From the IMG/VR virus record IMGVR_UViG_3300032315_001715, positions 310,001 through 374,000 of that record: a stretch of DNA of 64,000 nucleotides. One strand, 5' to 3'. The notes beneath the pieces were generated by a model. That model worked only from the letters and a program-made list of their open reading frames with translations, ran no database searches and had not been told where the DNA came from. The translations under genes and the position numbers were made by a program. How positions within the stretch are numbered: position 1 is the stretch's first letter; each line of letters starts with the position of its first letter. Positions 11,051 through 63,702 of this stretch are shown here, piece by piece.

Positions 11051-11125
11051 GCTTTGCTGTGCTGGTGGACAGCCGGAGGCCTCTAAAACCTCGCAGTGAT
11101 GGTTCAATTCCGTCGCAGAGCACCA
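11051..11125 (+). tRNA. tRNA with CUA anticodon (amber suppressor-type), discriminator A73
   Basis: Acceptor GCTTTGC/GCAGAGC + ACCA; anticodon loop CT-CTA-AA (11083-11085); T arm GATGG-TTCAATT-CCGTC. Confidence 0.82.
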
Positions 11126-11130
11126 AGTTT

Positions 11131-11206
11131 GCTTCCATAGTTCAGTGGTCAGAACGGAGACCTCTAAATTCTCTTGTCGCAGGTTCGAATCCTGCTGGAA
11201 GCGCCA
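11131..11206 (+). tRNA. tRNA with CUA anticodon (amber suppressor-type), discriminator G73
   Basis: Acceptor GCTTCCA/TGGAAGC + GCCA; D arm GTTC/GAAC; loop CT-CTA-AA (11164-11166); T arm GCAGG-TTCGAAT-CCTGC. Confidence 0.9.
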
Positions 11207-51465: not shown

Positions 51466-52563
51466 ATGGCACACAAGTACGATATGGCCGTATTCATCGG
51501 CCGATTCCAACCATTCCATCTAGGTCACCGAGCGGTGATCGAACAGGGGCTTGAACAAGCAGACCACGTCGTGGTGCTTGTTGGCTCCGCCCGCAGCCCG
51601 CGTTGCCATCGCAATCCGTTCAGCTTTGCCGAGCGCAAGGAAATGATCCTCGGTGCATTTTCCGGTGAGGTTCGCGATCGGGTCATCGTCCTGCCACTCG
51701 AGGATGCTGCATACAATGATGCGCAGTGGGTCCTCAATGTGCAAAAGCAGGTAGAGCAGGGTGCATGGTACGCCGGTCTGGCTGGTGCTACACTAGGTAC
51801 AATTTCCGAGAAGGTCCGCGTTGCGCTCATCGGTCACAGCAAGGACGCAACCAGCTACTATCTCAAGCTGTTCCCGCAGTGGGATAACATTGAGGTGTCC
51901 AATTTCCGAGATCTCAACGGCACGCTGATCCGCAGCACGTTTTTCAGCAACATCGGACACATGTGGGTCAAGGACGCTGACGGTCACCGCGCCGGCGATC
52001 TCCCGCGTGATGCAACCATCACTGGCAACGTGCGAGAGTTCCTCGAAGGATTCATTGACACGCCAGAATACAAGCTGATCCGGGATGAAAACGAGTTCAT
52101 CCGCAAGTACCGTGCGAGCTGGGCATCAGCGCCTTACGCACCGACATTCGTTACCGTGGATGCCATCGTGGTGCAGAGTGGACATGTGCTGCTGGTGCGC
52201 CGAGGTGCCAACCCGGGCAAGGGACTGTGGGCCATGCCTGGCGGGTTCATCAACGCTGATGAACGCATCCGCAATGCCGTGATCCGCGAGCTTCGTGAGG
52301 AAACCGGCATCAAGGTGCCTGATGCGGTGCTGCGTGGTAGCATTGTTGAACAGGACGTGTTTGACGATCCCAATCGATCGGCACGTGGACGCACGATCAC
52401 GCATGCGTTCCTCATCAAGCTGCGTGACGAGACCGCGCTGCCCAAGGTCAAGGGCATGGACGATGCTGACAAGGCACGATGGGTTCCCATCAGCCAGCTC
52501 AAGCCCGAGGATTTTTTTGAAGATCACTACCATATAGTGATGTCAATGTTGGCTCGGATCTGA
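51466..52563 (+). CDS. nadM: bifunctional NMN adenylyltransferase / ADP-ribose pyrophosphatase (NadM-Nudix)
   Basis: GRFQPFHLGH, RNPFSFAER; Nudix box GGF...AVIRELREETG. Confidence 0.95.
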   Translation: MAHKYDMAVFIGRFQPFHLGHRAVIEQGLEQADHVVVLVGSARSPRCHRNPFSFAERKEMILGAFSGEVRDRVIVLPLEDAAYNDAQWVLNVQKQVEQGAWYAGLAGATLGTISEKVRVALIGHSKDATSYYLKLFPQWDNIEVSNFRDLNGTLIRSTFFSNIGHMWVKDADGHRAGDLPRDATITGNVREFLEGFIDTPEYKLIRDENEFIRKYRASWASAPYAPTFVTVDAIVVQSGHVLLVRRGANPGKGLWAMPGGFINADERIRNAVIRELREETGIKVPDAVLRGSIVEQDVFDDPNRSARGRTITHAFLIKLRDETALPKVKGMDDADKARWVPISQLKPEDFFEDHYHIVMSMLARI

Positions 52564-57374: not shown

Positions 57375-57647
57375 ATGCACGACAATTCACATGACGCCAC
57401 GGAAAGCCGCGTGGCACAATGGATCAACGCCAGGACAGGTCTGGGTAGCGGGAACGATCCAGTTGGTTTTGTGCTGGCCAGCTACGATCTCAAGATCCAG
57501 GAAATGGCTGAGATGCGGACAAAGCTTGCAGCCCTTGAAGAAATACTAGCCATGACGGCAAAGGTCTGCGGTCGCAACAACTGCAACTGCCCTCGATCCG
57601 ACCAGGTTAAAAAGCTGGTAAACGCATACATGGAGAAATTCGCATGA
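57375..57647 (+). CDS. hypothetical protein
   Basis: Start after promoter; coupled to rpiB. Confidence 0.55.
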   Translation: MHDNSHDATESRVAQWINARTGLGSGNDPVGFVLASYDLKIQEMAEMRTKLAALEEILAMTAKVCGRNNCNCPRSDQVKKLVNAYMEKFA

Positions 57648-58126
57648 ATCTTGAGGAATATCGCAATGACACCAATCGTGGGTTCATCGTGGCCGTGGCC
57701 AGTGACCATGCTGGCGTTGACATGCGGGTGGCGATCAGGGATCTTTTGAGAAGTACCGGAGCTCGCGGTCATTACGTGATTGATTTTGGTCCGATGCCCG
57801 TCGACGGTCGTGTTGACTATCCGGATTATGCGGCCAAGGTGGCGGAGAGCGTGCTCTCCGGTGAAGCTGATCGAGGCATCCTCATCTGCGGATCCGGCAT
57901 CGGCATGAGCATGGCAGCCAATCGGCACAAGGGTATCCGTTGTGCCATGGTCAGCGATGTCACCTCTGCACGTCTCAGCAGGCAACACAACAATGCCAAC
58001 ATCCTTGCGCTTGGTGCTCGGCTAATCGGCCCTGATCTTGCCTGGGCAATCGTAGAGGAATGGCTCAAGACACCATATGAGGGCGGCAGGCATGACCAGC
58101 GCATCGCCAAGATGGATGTTATGTGA
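57644..58126 (+). CDS. rpiB: ribose-5-phosphate isomerase B
   Basis: SDHAG, DYPD, ICGSGIGMSMAANR, HNNANILALG, GGRH..RI. Confidence 0.95.
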   Translation: MNLEEYRNDTNRGFIVAVASDHAGVDMRVAIRDLLRSTGARGHYVIDFGPMPVDGRVDYPDYAAKVAESVLSGEADRGILICGSGIGMSMAANRHKGIRCAMVSDVTSARLSRQHNNANILALGARLIGPDLAWAIVEEWLKTPYEGGRHDQRIAKMDVM

Positions 58127-58444: not shown

Positions 58445-58864
58445 CTAGCGAAACCATCCAACTGGCAGTCCATTGGCAATTCTGTGCTGCCATTCTTCCA
58501 CGGTGCCGGGATATCTCCAAGCCCACACTGCTACCATCAGCATGAACGCACCTAGGCCTGCGACCAACAAGATGTTACCCGTGGTCAAATAAAGCGTGAT
58601 CAAGCTGATGTCCATTGTTATCACCATCATCCACTTGGCACGGGTGGGAAACACACGCTTTTCGCTCCAGTTCCTGAGGAATGGACCAAACAGCCGATGA
58701 TTCATGATCCAATCGTGCCATCGTTTTGAACCCTTGGCAAAGCAAAATGCTGCCGCAACGGTGGGAGTGCTCCAGGGTATCCCCGGCGTTATAATACCGA
58801 TGTATGCAATGCCTAGGAAGATGAATCCAAGGCACATCCAGAAAATCTTTTTGATTCGTTCCAT
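58445..58864 (-). CDS. DUF454/YbaN family membrane protein
   Basis: IGIITPGIPWSTP..AAAFCFAKGSKRWHDW..NH..FGP; start 58864 after TAAATA. Confidence 0.85.
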   Translation of the reverse strand: MERIKKIFWMCLGFIFLGIAYIGIITPGIPWSTPTVAAAFCFAKGSKRWHDWIMNHRLFGPFLRNWSEKRVFPTRAKWMMVITMDISLITLYLTTGNILLVAGLGAFMLMVAVWAWRYPGTVEEWQHRIANGLPVGWFR

Positions 58865-58941
58865 GTGTGTATTTACGATGTTGTTGACAACCATCGAGAT
58901 GCGTGCTTTAATCTACATGGATATCAATCGTAGGATTACAA

Positions 58942-59691
58942 ATGAAACCTCTCTATAACATCAACGGCCTTGTCCATTGGACGCAACGTGAAATCTCAAT
59001 GCGGGAAGCCATGCAAGAGAGATTTGCCGCGGAGGTGTTTGAGTGGCTTCGTGGAACCAATCCTGCTTGGCGGTTCGATCGCGTGGAAGCGCCCATCATG
59101 ATTCCCCGCACAATGATCAACCCTAACTACACCAACGACGATCTCTGGGTGTTTGAACGGCACGACGAGCACGAGCCTGAGCTGGTGGCACGACCAGAAA
59201 CCACACCCAGCACCTATGCCTGGATGGTTGACCAGCTGCAAGGCCACAACGGCATCCGCCTTCCCTGGTGCGTGTGGCAAAGCGGCAAGAGCTTCCGTGC
59301 TGAGCAGGACCAGGTGCTGAAGAACATGCGCCTCAAGGAATTCTACCAGATGGAATTCCAGTGCGCTTACTCCTCGGACACCGCCAACGACTATCATGCC
59401 GACTGCCTTGAACCCATGCGCAAGATGCTAGGGTCGGCGCTGGGCCTGCCCACCCGCGTGATTGCCAGCGACCGGCTGCCCAGCTACAGTGAAATCACCA
59501 TGGACGTGGAGGTGGATACCGGTGAGCGTTGGATGGAGGTTTGCTCTATCAGCCGTCGCACGGACTTTCCCATCAGGAACCGTTACCAGGGCAAGAAGGG
59601 CATCGTGGAGACCGACATCATGGTGCTTGAGATCGCCATTGGACTTGATCGCTGCGTGAACGCACGTACCATCGCTAACAGTCTGATCTAA
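58942..59691 (+). CDS. alpha2-type glycyl-tRNA synthetase-like catalytic core, no anticodon-binding domain
   Basis: ARPETT, motif 2 QSGKSFRAE...RLKEFYQMEFQ, WMEVCSISRRTDF, motif 3 EIAIGLDR, then ends. Confidence 0.8.
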   Translation: MKPLYNINGLVHWTQREISMREAMQERFAAEVFEWLRGTNPAWRFDRVEAPIMIPRTMINPNYTNDDLWVFERHDEHEPELVARPETTPSTYAWMVDQLQGHNGIRLPWCVWQSGKSFRAEQDQVLKNMRLKEFYQMEFQCAYSSDTANDYHADCLEPMRKMLGSALGLPTRVIASDRLPSYSEITMDVEVDTGERWMEVCSISRRTDFPIRNRYQGKKGIVETDIMVLEIAIGLDRCVNARTIANSLI

Positions 59692-59700
59692 GGAAAACAA

Positions 59701-60093
59701 GTGATGAGCAAATGGATTATCTCTCCTGCCGTGAAGAAGAACATTGAAGAAAACTCCATGTGGACTAAAAACGGCCAAACGATCTGCAGGATCGAATGGT
59801 ATCGCTGGGGATCATGGAGCATGGAATCAGATCAACGCCCTGATGTTGATCTGGACAATCCCGATGGCTACGATGTCTATGGTTCCGATTACGATTGGGA
59901 GCTGGTTGATATGACCGACGGGGTCTCCGCGGAATGGGAATTCCCCGATGATATGGACGCTGCTGAACAAACTCGGATAGAAGAGCTCTACGACGAAGAG
60001 GGGTATTCGGGGCTTGAGGAGGATGGCTGGGATAATTCAGAAACCGAGGTTTTCATCCACGGGCTGCTTGAACTCACGGTCGAAACCGATTGA
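59701..60093 (+). CDS. acidic hypothetical protein
   Basis: AAGGA RBS; Trp/Asp/Glu rich. Confidence 0.65.
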   Translation: MMSKWIISPAVKKNIEENSMWTKNGQTICRIEWYRWGSWSMESDQRPDVDLDNPDGYDVYGSDYDWELVDMTDGVSAEWEFPDDMDAAEQTRIEELYDEEGYSGLEEDGWDNSETEVFIHGLLELTVETD

Positions 60094-60145: not shown

Positions 60146-61402
60146 ATGAGCACATTTTCCTGCCCGCTGGTTCGGGTATCCGAGGTCATTGACCATCCCA
60201 ATGCCGACCGGCTCAGTATCGTCAAGCTGGAAGGTCTGGGTTATACCTGCATCAGCGGCAAGCTGGAGGACGGTAGCCCGCGCTACAAGGCGGGAGACTG
60301 GGTGGTTTACATTCCCAGCGCCGCCATTTTGCCTGAATACCTGCTCAAGGAAATGGATTTCTGGAATGCAGAAACCCGCAAGGGTATGCTAGCAGGCAGC
60401 AACGGCGATCGGGTAAAGCCTCTCCGTTTGCGAGGCATCTTCAGCGAGGGTGTGCTGTATCCAGCATCAGTCACTGTGAATGACAACACTGAGATGATGC
60501 CTGAAGGTTATCTGCGCCGATACTGGCAAGTGGCCCTAGGAGAAAGCGATGGCGAGCTTTTGATGCGCATCGTGCGGCTCATGCCCGTGAATAAGCTGGA
60601 GGCTGTTGAGAGTATTGCCGGGCGCGATATGAGCGAACGTCTGGGCATCACCAAGTACGAGCCGCCCATCCCAGTCCACATGGCGGGTGAGGTAGCCAAC
60701 CTGTTTGACCACACCGTGCGCTACGATTTTGAGCGACTGGAGAGCGTGCCTGACATGTTTGCTTCAGACATGACGGTAACGGCCACTGAAAAGCTGCACG
60801 GAACCTTTTGCGCCATTGTCTATGAGCCTGGGCTAAACCACGCCGAGATGTTTGGCACCAACGGTGACATCATCGTCCACAGCAAGGGTCTCGGTGGTCA
60901 GGGCCTGGCGTTCAAGAACAACGCAGCCAATGACGGTAACCTCTATGTCAAGACCCTGCGCAAGCTGCTTGGTGACGGTCTGGAAGATCGCTTTCGCACC
61001 CTGGCCACCAGCTATGCTGGCAAGCGTTATGCCATCCTGGGCGAGATCTATGGAAAGGGTGTGCAGGACCTAGCCTATGGCACCAAGGAGCCTGAGTTCC
61101 GCATGTTTGATGTGATGGTGGATGATATCTTCCTACCACAGGACGAGCTGGGATTTGATCATTCATTGCATGGCATCCCGTTTGCACCCGTCCTCTACAA
61201 TGGACCGTTTAACATTGAGGCGCTTACCGCGGTGCGAGACGGCAAGACAACTGTAGGCGGAGATAACATCCGCGAAGGCATCGTGGTGCGTGCGGGTTGG
61301 TGGCAGCGCCATCCCATTCATGGTCGTCGGATCGCCAAGATGATCAGCCCTGACTACCTCTTGCGCAAGGTCAAGGGTGGCGAAGCAACGGAATATACCT
61401 AA
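60146..61402 (+). CDS. RNA ligase (DRB0094/Rnl5 family)
   Basis: HPNADRL OB-like N-domain, LRGIFSEG, TEKLHGT, GEIYG, FDV, REGIV, KMISPDYL. Confidence 0.9.
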   Translation: MSTFSCPLVRVSEVIDHPNADRLSIVKLEGLGYTCISGKLEDGSPRYKAGDWVVYIPSAAILPEYLLKEMDFWNAETRKGMLAGSNGDRVKPLRLRGIFSEGVLYPASVTVNDNTEMMPEGYLRRYWQVALGESDGELLMRIVRLMPVNKLEAVESIAGRDMSERLGITKYEPPIPVHMAGEVANLFDHTVRYDFERLESVPDMFASDMTVTATEKLHGTFCAIVYEPGLNHAEMFGTNGDIIVHSKGLGGQGLAFKNNAANDGNLYVKTLRKLLGDGLEDRFRTLATSYAGKRYAILGEIYGKGVQDLAYGTKEPEFRMFDVMVDDIFLPQDELGFDHSLHGIPFAPVLYNGPFNIEALTAVRDGKTTVGGDNIREGIVVRAGWWQRHPIHGRRIAKMISPDYLLRKVKGGEATEYT

Positions 61403-61923: not shown

Positions 61924-62376
61924 GTGATGAAGAAGAAAGCTGTGATTAAAACTCTCAGTGCTGGGGTGATTGTCACCGATGGTGCCCAACTGCTGCTAGG
62001 ACATGTTACCGGATCTCGCCATTGGGACATTCCCAAGGGCAAGGTGGATCCTGGCGAATCCGAAATTGATGGTGCGGTGCGCGAGCTATACGAGGAAACC
62101 AGCATGGTGGTTGACCCCGCCGTGCTGGTAGGGCTCGGTACCTTTCCTTACAAGCGAACCAAGGATCTCAGCCTTTGGCTGTATCGCACTGACATCATGC
62201 CTGATCCCAAAACATTGGACTGTCTCAGCACCTTTGACTCTGGCAAGGGCGCAATGAAAAAGGAAATGGATGCGTTTGCGGTGGTGTCATGGGATAATGC
62301 CCGAAATTACGTGATCCCGGACATGTGGGCGGTGCTGGAAAAGGTCAAGGCACTGATCGATGGCAAGAAAGCCTAA
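61924..62376 (+). CDS. NUDIX hydrolase
   Basis: WDIPKGKVDPGESEIDGAVRELYEET. Confidence 0.9.
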   Translation: MMKKKAVIKTLSAGVIVTDGAQLLLGHVTGSRHWDIPKGKVDPGESEIDGAVRELYEETSMVVDPAVLVGLGTFPYKRTKDLSLWLYRTDIMPDPKTLDCLSTFDSGKGAMKKEMDAFAVVSWDNARNYVIPDMWAVLEKVKALIDGKKA

Positions 62377-62887
62377 AACTTCCCCGTCGACGCACGCATT
62401 TATTGTGTTAATGGGATGCGTGATACTGCATTTTCAGGTGGCTATGTTTGCACCAGATACTGTGTTTTGGTCGATTGTTTACGTAAGCCTAGCAGTTATT
62501 ACCATGATCCTAGCGATAGCTCCTTTTGTTGTCTCACGACGATGGGCAGTTTTGATCCTATCATGCTTTTATAGAAACTCCGTTCCGGTAGAGCTCATTG
62601 ACCATGAAGGTGATCGGTATTATAGCCTTGCTGGTACCGATTCTGATGGACGGCTCGCGGCCCCGGTTCATTGGTCAACAAACATTGGGCATTGCATGCT
62701 CAATGACGATGGCCGTGTTGATCCACGAAGCGACTCCTCATATGTGTATCTTTGGGCTCCGTTGCGGCGGAAAGAGCGTGTCTTCCATATGCTGCGGAAT
62801 GATTTTCCCGACCTTGCCCAGCTGGACGAGCTTGACGTGCAGGAATGCCGTGTTATTATGAGGAACGCTTACAAAAACGGAGATTAA
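62360..62887 (+). CDS. membrane hypothetical protein
   Basis: Two N-terminal TM helices. Confidence 0.6.
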   Translation: MARKPKTSPSTHAFIVLMGCVILHFQVAMFAPDTVFWSIVYVSLAVITMILAIAPFVVSRRWAVLILSCFYRNSVPVELIDHEGDRYYSLAGTDSDGRLAAPVHWSTNIGHCMLNDDGRVDPRSDSSYVYLWAPLRRKERVFHMLRNDFPDLAQLDELDVQECRVIMRNAYKNGD

Positions 62888-62889
62888 CG

Positions 62890-63702
62890 ATGATCGGTGA
62901 TGCACTTGGCGACCGCATGAAAACCTACGAAGCACAGGAAACCGCCCGTCGGTTCCTTCCTGGTTTGCCCATTTATGCCCGCATTGACGGGCGTGGATTC
63001 AGCAAGTTCACCAAGGGCATGCAACGTCCGTATGATCCTCGCATGAGCGCTGCCATGGTCGACGCTACCAAGACGCTGGTTGAGCAAACCCATGCAACCA
63101 TTGGATATGTGCAAAGCGACGAGATCAGCCTCGTCTGGATCCCCACGGAGAACGGACACGGGTGGTTTGATGGCAAGACCATGAAGATGGCCAGCGTTCT
63201 AGCCGGCCTCACCACGGCGTCGTTCATCGGGGCAATGGCGGATCATTTTGATGACTGGGAAATGCTGTTGTTCAAGCTGCCGCACTTTGACGCCCGCGTG
63301 ATCAGCATGCCTAGTGAAACGGAAGCGGCTAACATGCTGCTGTGGCGAAACCTCGATGCTACCAAGAATGCCGTTAGCATGGCCGCAAGCCACTACTACA
63401 GCCACAAGGAGCTACACGGCAAGAACGGCAGCGAAAAGCAGGAGATGCTATTCCAAAAGGAGGTGAATTTCAACGATTATCCCTTTTTCTTCAAACGTGG
63501 AACGTTTGTTCGTCGGATGGCCACGGAGCGCACGCTCACTACCGACGAACTTGCTCGCATCCCGGAGAATCATCGGCCGTCAGCCGATCAACTCCTGGTG
63601 AGGACCGAGGTTGTTGATTTTGATCTTCCTCCTCTCAATCGGATCTCAAACCGTACCGATGTTTTGTTCCGTGCTGCCGATGTGGTGGTAAATATCGGGT
63701 AA
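62890..63702 (+). CDS. thg1: tRNA-His guanylyltransferase-like protein (Thg1/TLP)
   Basis: GDRMKTYE, RIDGRGFSKFT, YVQSDEISL, FDAR, KNAVSM. Confidence 0.92.
   Translation: MIGDALGDRMKTYEAQETARRFLPGLPIYARIDGRGFSKFTKGMQRPYDPRMSAAMVDATKTLVEQTHATIGYVQSDEISLVWIPTENGHGWFDGKTMKMASVLAGLTTASFIGAMADHFDDWEMLLFKLPHFDARVISMPSETEAANMLLWRNLDATKNAVSMAASHYYSHKELHGKNGSEKQEMLFQKEVNFNDYPFFFKRGTFVRRMATERTLTTDELARIPENHRPSADQLLVRTEVVDFDLPPLNRISNRTDVLFRAADVVVNIG

Follow-up and report, generated by a model that had tools for sequence, protein, structure and literature searches.

A stand-alone glycyl-tRNA synthetase-like catalytic core of jumbo phages and rhizobia that may glycylate tRNA without reading the anticodon

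What can a glycyl-tRNA synthetase (GlyRS) still do when little but its catalytic core is left? The question is raised by a gene at positions 58942-59691 (plus strand) of a 64,000-nucleotide stretch of viral DNA (here called the window; positions 310,001 to 374,000 of IMG/VR record IMGVR_UViG_3300032315_001715), which is part of a phage record of 452,799 bp that is estimated to be complete. Read from the sequence, the open reading frame (ORF) begins with ATG, spans 249 codons, and is preceded by a ribosome-binding site (AGGA, 58932-58935, plus strand) 6 nucleotides before the start; the product of 249 amino acids (aa) was assigned by Pfam, NCBIfam, PDB, and fold searches to a stand-alone, alpha2-GlyRS-like class II catalytic core. 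An earlier note had described it as a minimal GlyRS-like enzyme lacking the anticodon-binding domain and had suggested that it could charge two phage tRNAs with CUA anticodons, rescue tRNAs cut by nucleases, or make Ap4A-type nucleotides. We find that the protein is a class IIa aminoacyl-tRNA synthetase catalytic core whose nearest relatives, by sequence and by fold, are the alpha2-type GlyRSs. Our preferred reading, to which we give a probability of roughly 45%, is that it works as a homodimeric GlyRS-derived core that glycylates tRNA 3' ends without reading the anticodon.

A class IIa core closest to alpha2 GlyRS

Residues 74 to 240 match PF00587 (class II core of the G, H, P, S, and T synthetases) above the Pfam cutoff (E value of 4e-10). 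The top NCBIfam model is the GlyRS model PRK04173 (E value of 5e-14), with 52.1 bits against a cutoff of 312, and the GlyRS model TIGR00389 scores 24.6 against a cutoff of 243, so the match stays below the curated equivalog level. With the single sequence as the query, the best PDB matches were the mycobacterial and N. equitans alpha2 GlyRSs (E value of 1e-5); with a profile of 54 family members, alpha2 GlyRS reached 4e-13, followed by PylRS (2e-5) and ProRS, and the C-terminal 55 residues alone returned only noise. Structure prediction, proposed in the earlier note as a check, gave a confident AlphaFold2 model built on the family alignment (predicted local distance difference test [pLDDT] score of 90.2, predicted template modeling score of 0.89). 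The closest fold to this model was alpha2 GlyRS, both in Foldseek (E values of ~1e-15, the best being 2e-15; TM score of 0.70 to 0.74 on the query) and in VIA-align (Z of 22.6 for N. equitans GlyRS and 21.5 for human GlyRS), with ThrRS, the amino acid:carrier-protein ligase Bll0957 (20.1), SerRS, and ProRS following at a Z of about 20. The description of a 249-aa protein with alpha2-GlyRS catalytic motifs thus stands, as the ORF position was exact, motifs 1 to 3 are present, and GlyRS ranks first by sequence and by fold. PHROGs and PADLOC assigned the protein to no family, no PHROG or NCBIfam model is specific to this minimal GlyRS-like family, and a megablast search of the region against the phage collection gave no match. 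Among public reads, the stretch was present only in the probable source metagenome, and no RNA run contains it.

To map the active site, we transferred the ligand contacts reported for Mycobacterium tuberculosis GlyRS (PMC12208437) and human GlyRS (PMC4938167) through hidden Markov model (HMM) alignments and judged invariance on an alignment of 54 family sequences that includes phage and bacterial members. The segments are all on the plus strand. The motif 1 region (residues 44 to 55, 59071-59106), located from the alignment and the model, contains the invariant residues E49, P51, and P55 and lies at the center of the predicted homodimer interface. Further along, the RPETTP segment (residues 84 to 89, 59191-59208) supplies E86, the first glutamate of the glycine pocket (Glu165 in M. 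tuberculosis and Glu245 in human GlyRS). Motif 2 (residues 115 to 141, 59284-59364), with the pattern FRxE...R..EF.Q.E, carries the ATP-binding residues R119, E121, F134, and Q136 (Arg197, Glu199, Phe212, and Gln214 in M. tuberculosis) and the second pocket glutamate, E138 (Glu216; human Glu296). A GlyRS-specific lid and ribose/metal segment (residues 177 to 210, 59470-59571) includes DRLPxY with the lid tyrosine Y182 (Tyr264), followed by E199 and R206-x-D-F, in which E199 and R206 correspond to the ATP-site residues Glu284 and Arg291. Motif 3 (VLEIAIGLDR, residues 228 to 237, 59623-59652), whose correspondence was taken from the profile alignment to N. equitans GlyRS, provides the third glutamate, E230 (Glu324; human Glu522), the small residue A232 that bars larger side chains (Ala326; human Ser524), and the ATP-binding arginine R237 (Arg331).

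All of these mapped ATP and glycine residues, including the three glutamates that grip the glycine amino group, are invariant in the family alignment, and two buried positions differ conservatively from GlyRS (Glu218 to Q140 and Thr209 to L131). The GlyRS features that we tested at the catalytic level, namely, a class II core with motifs 1 to 3 and a pocket of three glutamates plus a serine or alanine, are therefore present. Judged from the alignments and the model, a GlyRS-type adenylate-forming site with a glycine-sized acidic pocket is kept throughout the family, and the protein probably forms glycyl-adenylate (Gly-AMP).

Class II synthetases, GlyRS included, can also make diadenosine tetraphosphate (Ap4A), and two NUDIX genes lie near the gene, one encoding a NadR-like nicotinamide mononucleotide (NMN) adenylyltransferase fused to a NUDIX domain (51466-52563, plus strand) and the other a second NUDIX hydrolase (61924-62376, plus strand). 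The core could accordingly have been kept as an Ap4A/Np4N synthase for nucleotide signaling or RNA capping chemistry and not for acyl transfer. We consider this very unlikely, since the pocket residues E86, E138, E230, A232, and Y182 would be unconstrained if only ATP-ATP condensation mattered, and since NUDIX genes are common in jumbo phages and are not conserved neighbors of this gene. The invariance of the glycine pocket argues instead that amino acid activation, and not glycine-independent Ap4A synthesis, is the activity under selection. A noncatalytic role, as a HisZ-like regulator or as a decoy for a host factor or toxin, is highly improbable; regulators derived from synthetases do exist, and HisZ aligns with the model at a Z of ~17 to 18, but HisZ-type proteins have lost their catalytic residues, whereas the arginines of motifs 2 and 3 and the adenylate-binding residues are invariant here.

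Missing modules and a predicted dimer

The protein lacks the insertion domain that follows the first core strand of GlyRS, the insert that precedes motif 3, and the C-terminal HGTP anticodon-binding domain. Only ~25 residues separate the motif 1 strand from RPETTP, which leaves no insertion domain; in GlyRS, this domain (Phe83 region in Mtb/Mtr GlyRS) contributes to the site for A76 and the acceptor arm (PMC12208437). At the other end, the last residue lies 12 residues after R237 of motif 3, close to the 10 or so residues given in the earlier note, and no anticodon-binding domain is found in the protein, as that note had claimed. The domain is not supplied by another gene either. The whole 452,799-bp genome contained no match to PF03129 (HGTP_anticodon), PF01588 (tRNA_bind), or PF02092 (GlyS beta), and its one PF00587 gene is the 249-aa ORF; a separately encoded anticodon-binding subunit, which the earlier note had held would speak against its proposal, was thus looked for across the genome and not found. 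Likewise, no PF03129 domain was present in the best 150 of the 794 family clusters described below.

A homodimer formed through motif 1 is predicted, with an interface score (ipSAE) of 0.78 compared with 0.00 for the best of three controls; at least 98% of contacts recur between the dimer runs, with a partner pLDDT of 88 or higher. Among solved structures, 20 of 30 homodimers and 1 of 23 single chains attained this mark; the counts apply only roughly here, because the prediction used an alignment of our own. Class II dimers already known to the prediction model may also have contributed to the result.

A family centered on jumbo phages

A word-index search recovered more than 1,100 homologues, nearly all of 240 to 260 aa, and an exhaustive profile search recovered 794 clusters (50% identity) at an E value of ≤1e-3, of which 110 were found at ≤1e-30. 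Among the best 150 of the 794 clusters, the longest members have at most 352 aa, and no member of these clusters, nor any of the longer members checked, is fused to another known domain. By itself, the short length of the protein might suggest that a full-length GlyRS gene has been truncated or is decaying. We give this negligible probability; a family this large with uniformly short members (including all 110 of the closest clusters) implies that the protein is not a fragment, and it is also conserved end to end with a confident, compact model. In addition, the next ORF (59701-60093) has no similarity to synthetases, and no anticodon-binding domain, in frame or frameshifted, lies downstream.

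A minority of members with 300 to 352 aa (P0121, P0122, P0125, P0131, P0144, and L147:8001-8903) carry an insert of 60 to 85 aa without a Pfam match. This insert sits exactly at the site of the acceptor-binding insertion domain of GlyRS, and it may be what is left of that module or a substitute for it.

Homologues occur in the cultivated jumbo phages of Sinorhizobium (Phosso), Xanthomonas (XbC2), Caulobacter (CcrBL9 and relatives), and Brevundimonas, under annotations such as "serine-tRNA synthetase," "RNA synthetase class II," "aminoacyl-tRNA synthetase," and "hypothetical protein." They were also found in 60 IMG/VR contigs, the majority of which exceed 200 kb, and in at least 129 GTDB species, chiefly of Rhizobium, Devosia, and Phenylobacterium, in which the gene is chromosomal. 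In a FastTree phylogeny, which was midpoint rooted and is indicative only, 79 bacterial sequences formed one shallow clade (support of 96) within a much deeper phage radiation, with the window protein together with L091, and L116, as its nearest neighbors. The family is therefore centered on jumbo phages, where most of its diversity lies. The searched literature, including jumbo-phage genomics and huge-phage papers, contained no description of it. One protein was identical between a metagenome-assembled genome (MAG) labeled Gammaproteobacteria (L020) and a 455-kb IMG/VR phage (L092), and the MAG contig, of 20.7 kb, probably comes from a jumbo phage and was binned into a bacterial genome.

Within the genus Rhizobium, the gene was present in 76 of 151 sampled species, compared with 3 of 251 in the other genera of its taxonomic family. 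Six Rhizobium genomes (G355, G362, G286, G293, G367, and G318) have copies that are frameshifted, interrupted by stops, or fragmentary, so that at least some hosts can do without the gene.

tRNA genes and tRNA repair genes surround the phage copies

The gene lies 9 kb before the main array of ~40 tRNA genes of its genome; ARAGORN called 43 tRNAs in this genome, most of them in one array at 378.8 to 414.5 kb (genome coordinates). Downstream, a 130-aa acidic ORF is followed by an ATP-dependent RNA ligase of the DRB0094 type with an N-terminal oligonucleotide-binding (OB) domain (60146-61402, plus strand, from family searches), the second NUDIX gene mentioned above, and a Thg1-like tRNA-His guanylyltransferase of the tRNA 5'-end repair family (62845-63702, plus strand; phrog_4717, E value of 3e-79). 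The Thg1-like gene and the RNA ligase form a small tRNA-repair neighborhood just downstream of the GlyRS-like gene. In the Phosso-like phages, the gene belongs to a conserved module with the order Rnl1 RNA ligase, R2K ATP-grasp, CysRS, tRNA, GlyRS-like gene, peptidyl-tRNA hydrolase, and polynucleotide kinase/phosphatase.

Across 43 distinct viral loci with full 8-kb flanks, a tRNA lies within 8 kb of the gene in 30, and five or more tRNAs do so in 18. By comparison, ~18% of positions in the window's genome lie within 8 kb of a tRNA, as estimated from the tRNA coordinates, and the excess near the gene is large. The commonest tRNA near the gene is tRNA-Gly (28 of ~214). As it is not consistently the nearest one and there is no genome-wide baseline for it, we make no claim of a specific tRNA-Gly linkage. 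The company of tRNA arrays and tRNA repair genes in phages points to tRNA as the substrate, and chiefly on this ground we favor tRNA glycylation over transfer to a non-RNA acceptor.

If this is right, the homodimer would make glycyl-adenylate from ATP and glycine and would then pass the glycine to a tRNA 3' end through contacts near the acceptor end only, with the anticodon playing no part in charging. The chances of this transfer step seem to us about even. The default acceptor would be phage or host tRNA-Gly, and in some lineages it may be a neighboring CUA suppressor tRNA. The phage's own tRNA toolkit (43 tRNAs, RNA ligases, the Thg1-like enzyme, and the GlyRS-like enzyme) would thus keep tRNAs intact and charged during infection.

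Several observations weigh against this role. The GlyRS parts that hold the acceptor stem and A76, namely, the insertion and anticodon-binding domains, are gone, which leaves tRNA binding and selection unexplained, and the family proteins are acidic (isoelectric point of about 5.4 to 6). No tRNA species is consistently nearest to the gene, and synteny with tRNA arrays is partly inherited, so that the viral loci cannot be counted as independent. In bacteria, the gene stands alone, with neighbors that vary by genus, with no tRNA or carrier-protein gene beside it, and with no neighbor gene conserved across bacterial genera. Finally, the searched literature held no biochemical data for any family member.

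Some of these observations would fit a glycine ligase with a non-tRNA acceptor, in which Gly-AMP would serve to modify a protein, a carrier thiol, a lipid, a cell wall precursor, a nucleic acid base, or a small amine. The loss of all tRNA-recognition modules, the solitary bacterial copies without tRNA context, and the dispensability of the gene in Rhizobium are all consistent with such an enzyme, and so is the precedent of other stripped synthetases, among which Bll0957 has a fold score (Z of 20.1) near that of GlyRS (22.6). Nevertheless, no carrier-protein, EF-P-like, or biosynthetic partner is conserved beside the gene in phages or bacteria, the family has neither the zinc site of the amino acid:carrier-protein ligases nor a sequence-level match to them, and its phage surroundings are tRNA arrays and tRNA repair genes. 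We therefore regard a non-tRNA acceptor as somewhat unlikely. In 80 bacterial loci of 12 kb, tRNA searching gave four doubtful calls of ~93 nucleotides, none with a CUA anticodon, and no regular tRNA neighbor. One neighbor that seemed common to 8 viral and 50 bacterial loci was rejected as an artifact, in which antisense ORFs lying over the gene had been joined by single-linkage clustering to a Rhizobium D-Ala-D-Ala carboxypeptidase.

Other features lie around the gene or elsewhere in the genome. Upstream in the window are an RpiB/LacAB sugar-phosphate isomerase (57644-58126, plus strand) and a DUF454 membrane protein (58445-58894, minus strand, opposite to the gene). Outside the window, the same genome (G000) has a transfer-messenger RNA called by ARAGORN at 111,695-112,033 (tag AANDNAAFENELLAA) and a second RNA ligase, of the Rnl1 type, at ~263,570-265,400 (minus strand), which matches in two pieces ~750 bp apart; the split could have arisen from an insertion, from an intein or intron, or from a frameshift.

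CUA tRNAs and the suppressor question

The window encodes two tRNAs with CUA anticodons, identified by ARAGORN and from the sequence: a canonical cloverleaf with discriminator A73 at 11051-11125 and one with G73 at 11131-11206, both on the plus strand and both with an encoded CCA end. ARAGORN labels them tRNA-Pyl, a label that reflects the anticodon only and that we reject, as both are ordinary cloverleaves with a normal D-loop GG and T-loop. The earlier note had stated that both carry G1:C72 and C2:G71 and that these pairs help to define glycine identity; both pairs are indeed present in both tRNAs, and they belong to the glycine identity set (PMC9976931). The combination occurs in 9 of the 43 phage tRNAs. 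The two CUA tRNAs differ from the phage's own tRNA-Gly in the 3:70 pair (U3:A70, not G3:C70) and in the discriminator (A73 or G73, not U73), and similarity indicated no parent isoacceptor for the CUA tRNAs. The G73 tRNA shares its acceptor stem (GCUUCCA/UGGAAGC) with the gene-adjacent CUA tRNA of an unrelated Phosso-like phage (L109:6892-6965), the remainder of the two molecules being different.

From these tRNAs the earlier note had suggested dedicated suppressor charging, in which the anticodon-blind enzyme loads the phage CUA tRNAs, probably with glycine, so that UAG is read through. The idea held in part. In nine Phosso-like phages, the sole tRNA beside the gene, between CysRS and the gene, has a CUA anticodon; five of these genomes were searched whole and have 52 to 59 tRNAs, mostly in distant arrays, with the CUA tRNA 50 to 1,900 bp upstream of the gene, and four more loci, with flanks of up to 8 kb only, show the same arrangement. 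In the deep and unrelated lineage L147/G022, the only tRNAs within 10 kb of the gene are three with CUA anticodons. In the window's genome, the two CUA tRNAs lie outside the main array, and phage operons that pair a synthetase with a suppressor tRNA are known, as in the TrpRS:tRNA-UCA pairs (PMC12636597).

The part that did not hold is generality. Co-occurrence of the gene with CUA tRNAs, clear in the Phosso-like clade and in L147, breaks down in 12 of the ~27 large records that carry the gene; in these 12, among them the CcrBL9 and Domovoi genomes, both complete, no CUA tRNA was detected by a pattern search that was checked with ARAGORN and has a sensitivity below 100%. In other carriers, the CUA tRNA is 22 to 300 kb from the gene (48 kb in the window). 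The acceptor stems of the gene-adjacent CUA tRNAs are not shared, with G1:C72 in seven of nine and C2:G71 in five of nine, and among these nine only G73 is constant. CUA tRNAs of both the G73 and A73 kinds exist, often one of each per genome (as in the window, L161, L162/L166, and L163/L167), which suggests that these genomes, where TAG still serves as a stop, encode two different suppressor identities. In addition, huge-phage CUA tRNAs have been reported as substrates of Escherichia coli GlnRS (PMC12636597), and Rhizobium, Devosia, and Phenylobacterium keep the gene with no regular tRNA neighbor in the 12-kb loci. A test for TAG recoding was negative both in the window's genome and at the loci with adjacent CUA tRNAs, and we reject recoding there; TAG is an ordinary if rare stop (10 to 14% of stops) in these genomes, and read-through brings no gain.

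Dedicated suppressor charging therefore seems rather improbable to us as an account of the gene. Some lineages may have a private pairing of enzyme and suppressor, but such a pairing cannot be the general role of the family. Its fullest form, a natural synthetase of ~250 aa without accessory domains that in some jumbo phages is privately paired with an adjacent amber-suppressor tRNA and places glycine at selected UAG codons under an otherwise standard code, is improbable.

Implications

If the protein does charge tRNA, few natural aminoacyl-tRNA synthetases would be smaller, and the "catalytic core plus acceptor-stem code" model of early synthetases would have a present-day example. Phages would then be able to supply tRNA charging without anticodon reading, and orthogonal translation systems might be built on the enzyme as a compact scaffold. 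If the acceptor is something other than tRNA, the family would represent a new class of GlyRS-derived ligases common to jumbo phages and rhizobia. Either way, the database labels under which the family is filed ("glycyl-tRNA synthetase," "serine-tRNA synthetase," and "hypothetical protein") are unproven. The family is also a natural test case for the minimal protein needed by a class II synthetase, and cultivable phages and rhizobia carry the gene.

Comparison with known enzymes

The closest known system is alpha2 GlyRS (EC 6.1.1.14; M. tuberculosis 8T5N, Thermus thermophilus 1ATI, N. equitans 5Z5E, and human 2PME). The family shares with it the class IIa fold, motifs 1 to 3, the motif 1 dimer (predicted in the family), the ATP-binding residues, the glutamate triad, the alanine or serine of the pocket, the lid tyrosine, and the R-T-D-F segment. 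The two differ in size (249 aa compared with 440 to 690 aa) and in that alpha2 GlyRS has an insertion domain between motif 1 and RPET, an insert before motif 3, a beta-hairpin linker, and the HGTP anticodon-binding domain, none of which is found in the GlyRS-like protein. The protein thus falls short of GlyRS proper in its insertion domain, its anticodon-binding domain, and its curated score, while the catalytic features of GlyRS are retained.

The amino acid:[carrier-protein] ligases Bll0957 and Atu2573 (PDB 3MEY), reportedly described by Mocibob et al., are likewise stand-alone class IIa cores (~300 aa) without a tRNA-binding domain, and they likewise occur in Rhizobiales. Some of them prefer glycine, according to the statement citing them in PMC9437257. 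These ligases have methanogen-type SerRS ancestry, a zinc site, and an adjacent carrier-protein gene, whereas the GlyRS-like family has GlyRS ancestry. The profile search gave no sequence match of the family to 3MEY or 3MF1 at an E value of ≤1, the family alignment has only one invariant cysteine and no set of zinc ligands, and no carrier-protein gene stood beside the GlyRS-like gene in the bacterial or phage loci examined.

PylSc, the split PylRS core, is likewise a class II core of ~270 aa, and it charges a CUA tRNA without reading the anticodon. PylRS is the second-best sequence family against the profile, although the match is much weaker (2e-5) than that of GlyRS (4e-13). Unlike PylSc, the GlyRS-like protein has the small acidic GlyRS pit as its pocket, and the CUA tRNAs of the window are canonical and not tRNA-Pyl.

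EpmA/PoxA (GenX), AsnA, HisZ, and GluQRS (YadB) follow the same pattern, each being a catalytic core that has shed its anticodon-binding domain and taken on a new acceptor or role. They come from other parent synthetases and align less closely with the model in VIA-align (GenX at a Z of 14.5, AsnA at 14.7, and HisZ in the range given above), and genes for the partners EF-P and HisG are not associated with the GlyRS-like gene. HisZ has lost its adenylate-forming residues and has HisG as a partner, whereas the catalytic arginines and glutamates are invariant in the GlyRS-like family, which has no conserved partner. The GlyRS-like family thus follows the pattern of these stripped paralogues, but from a different parent.

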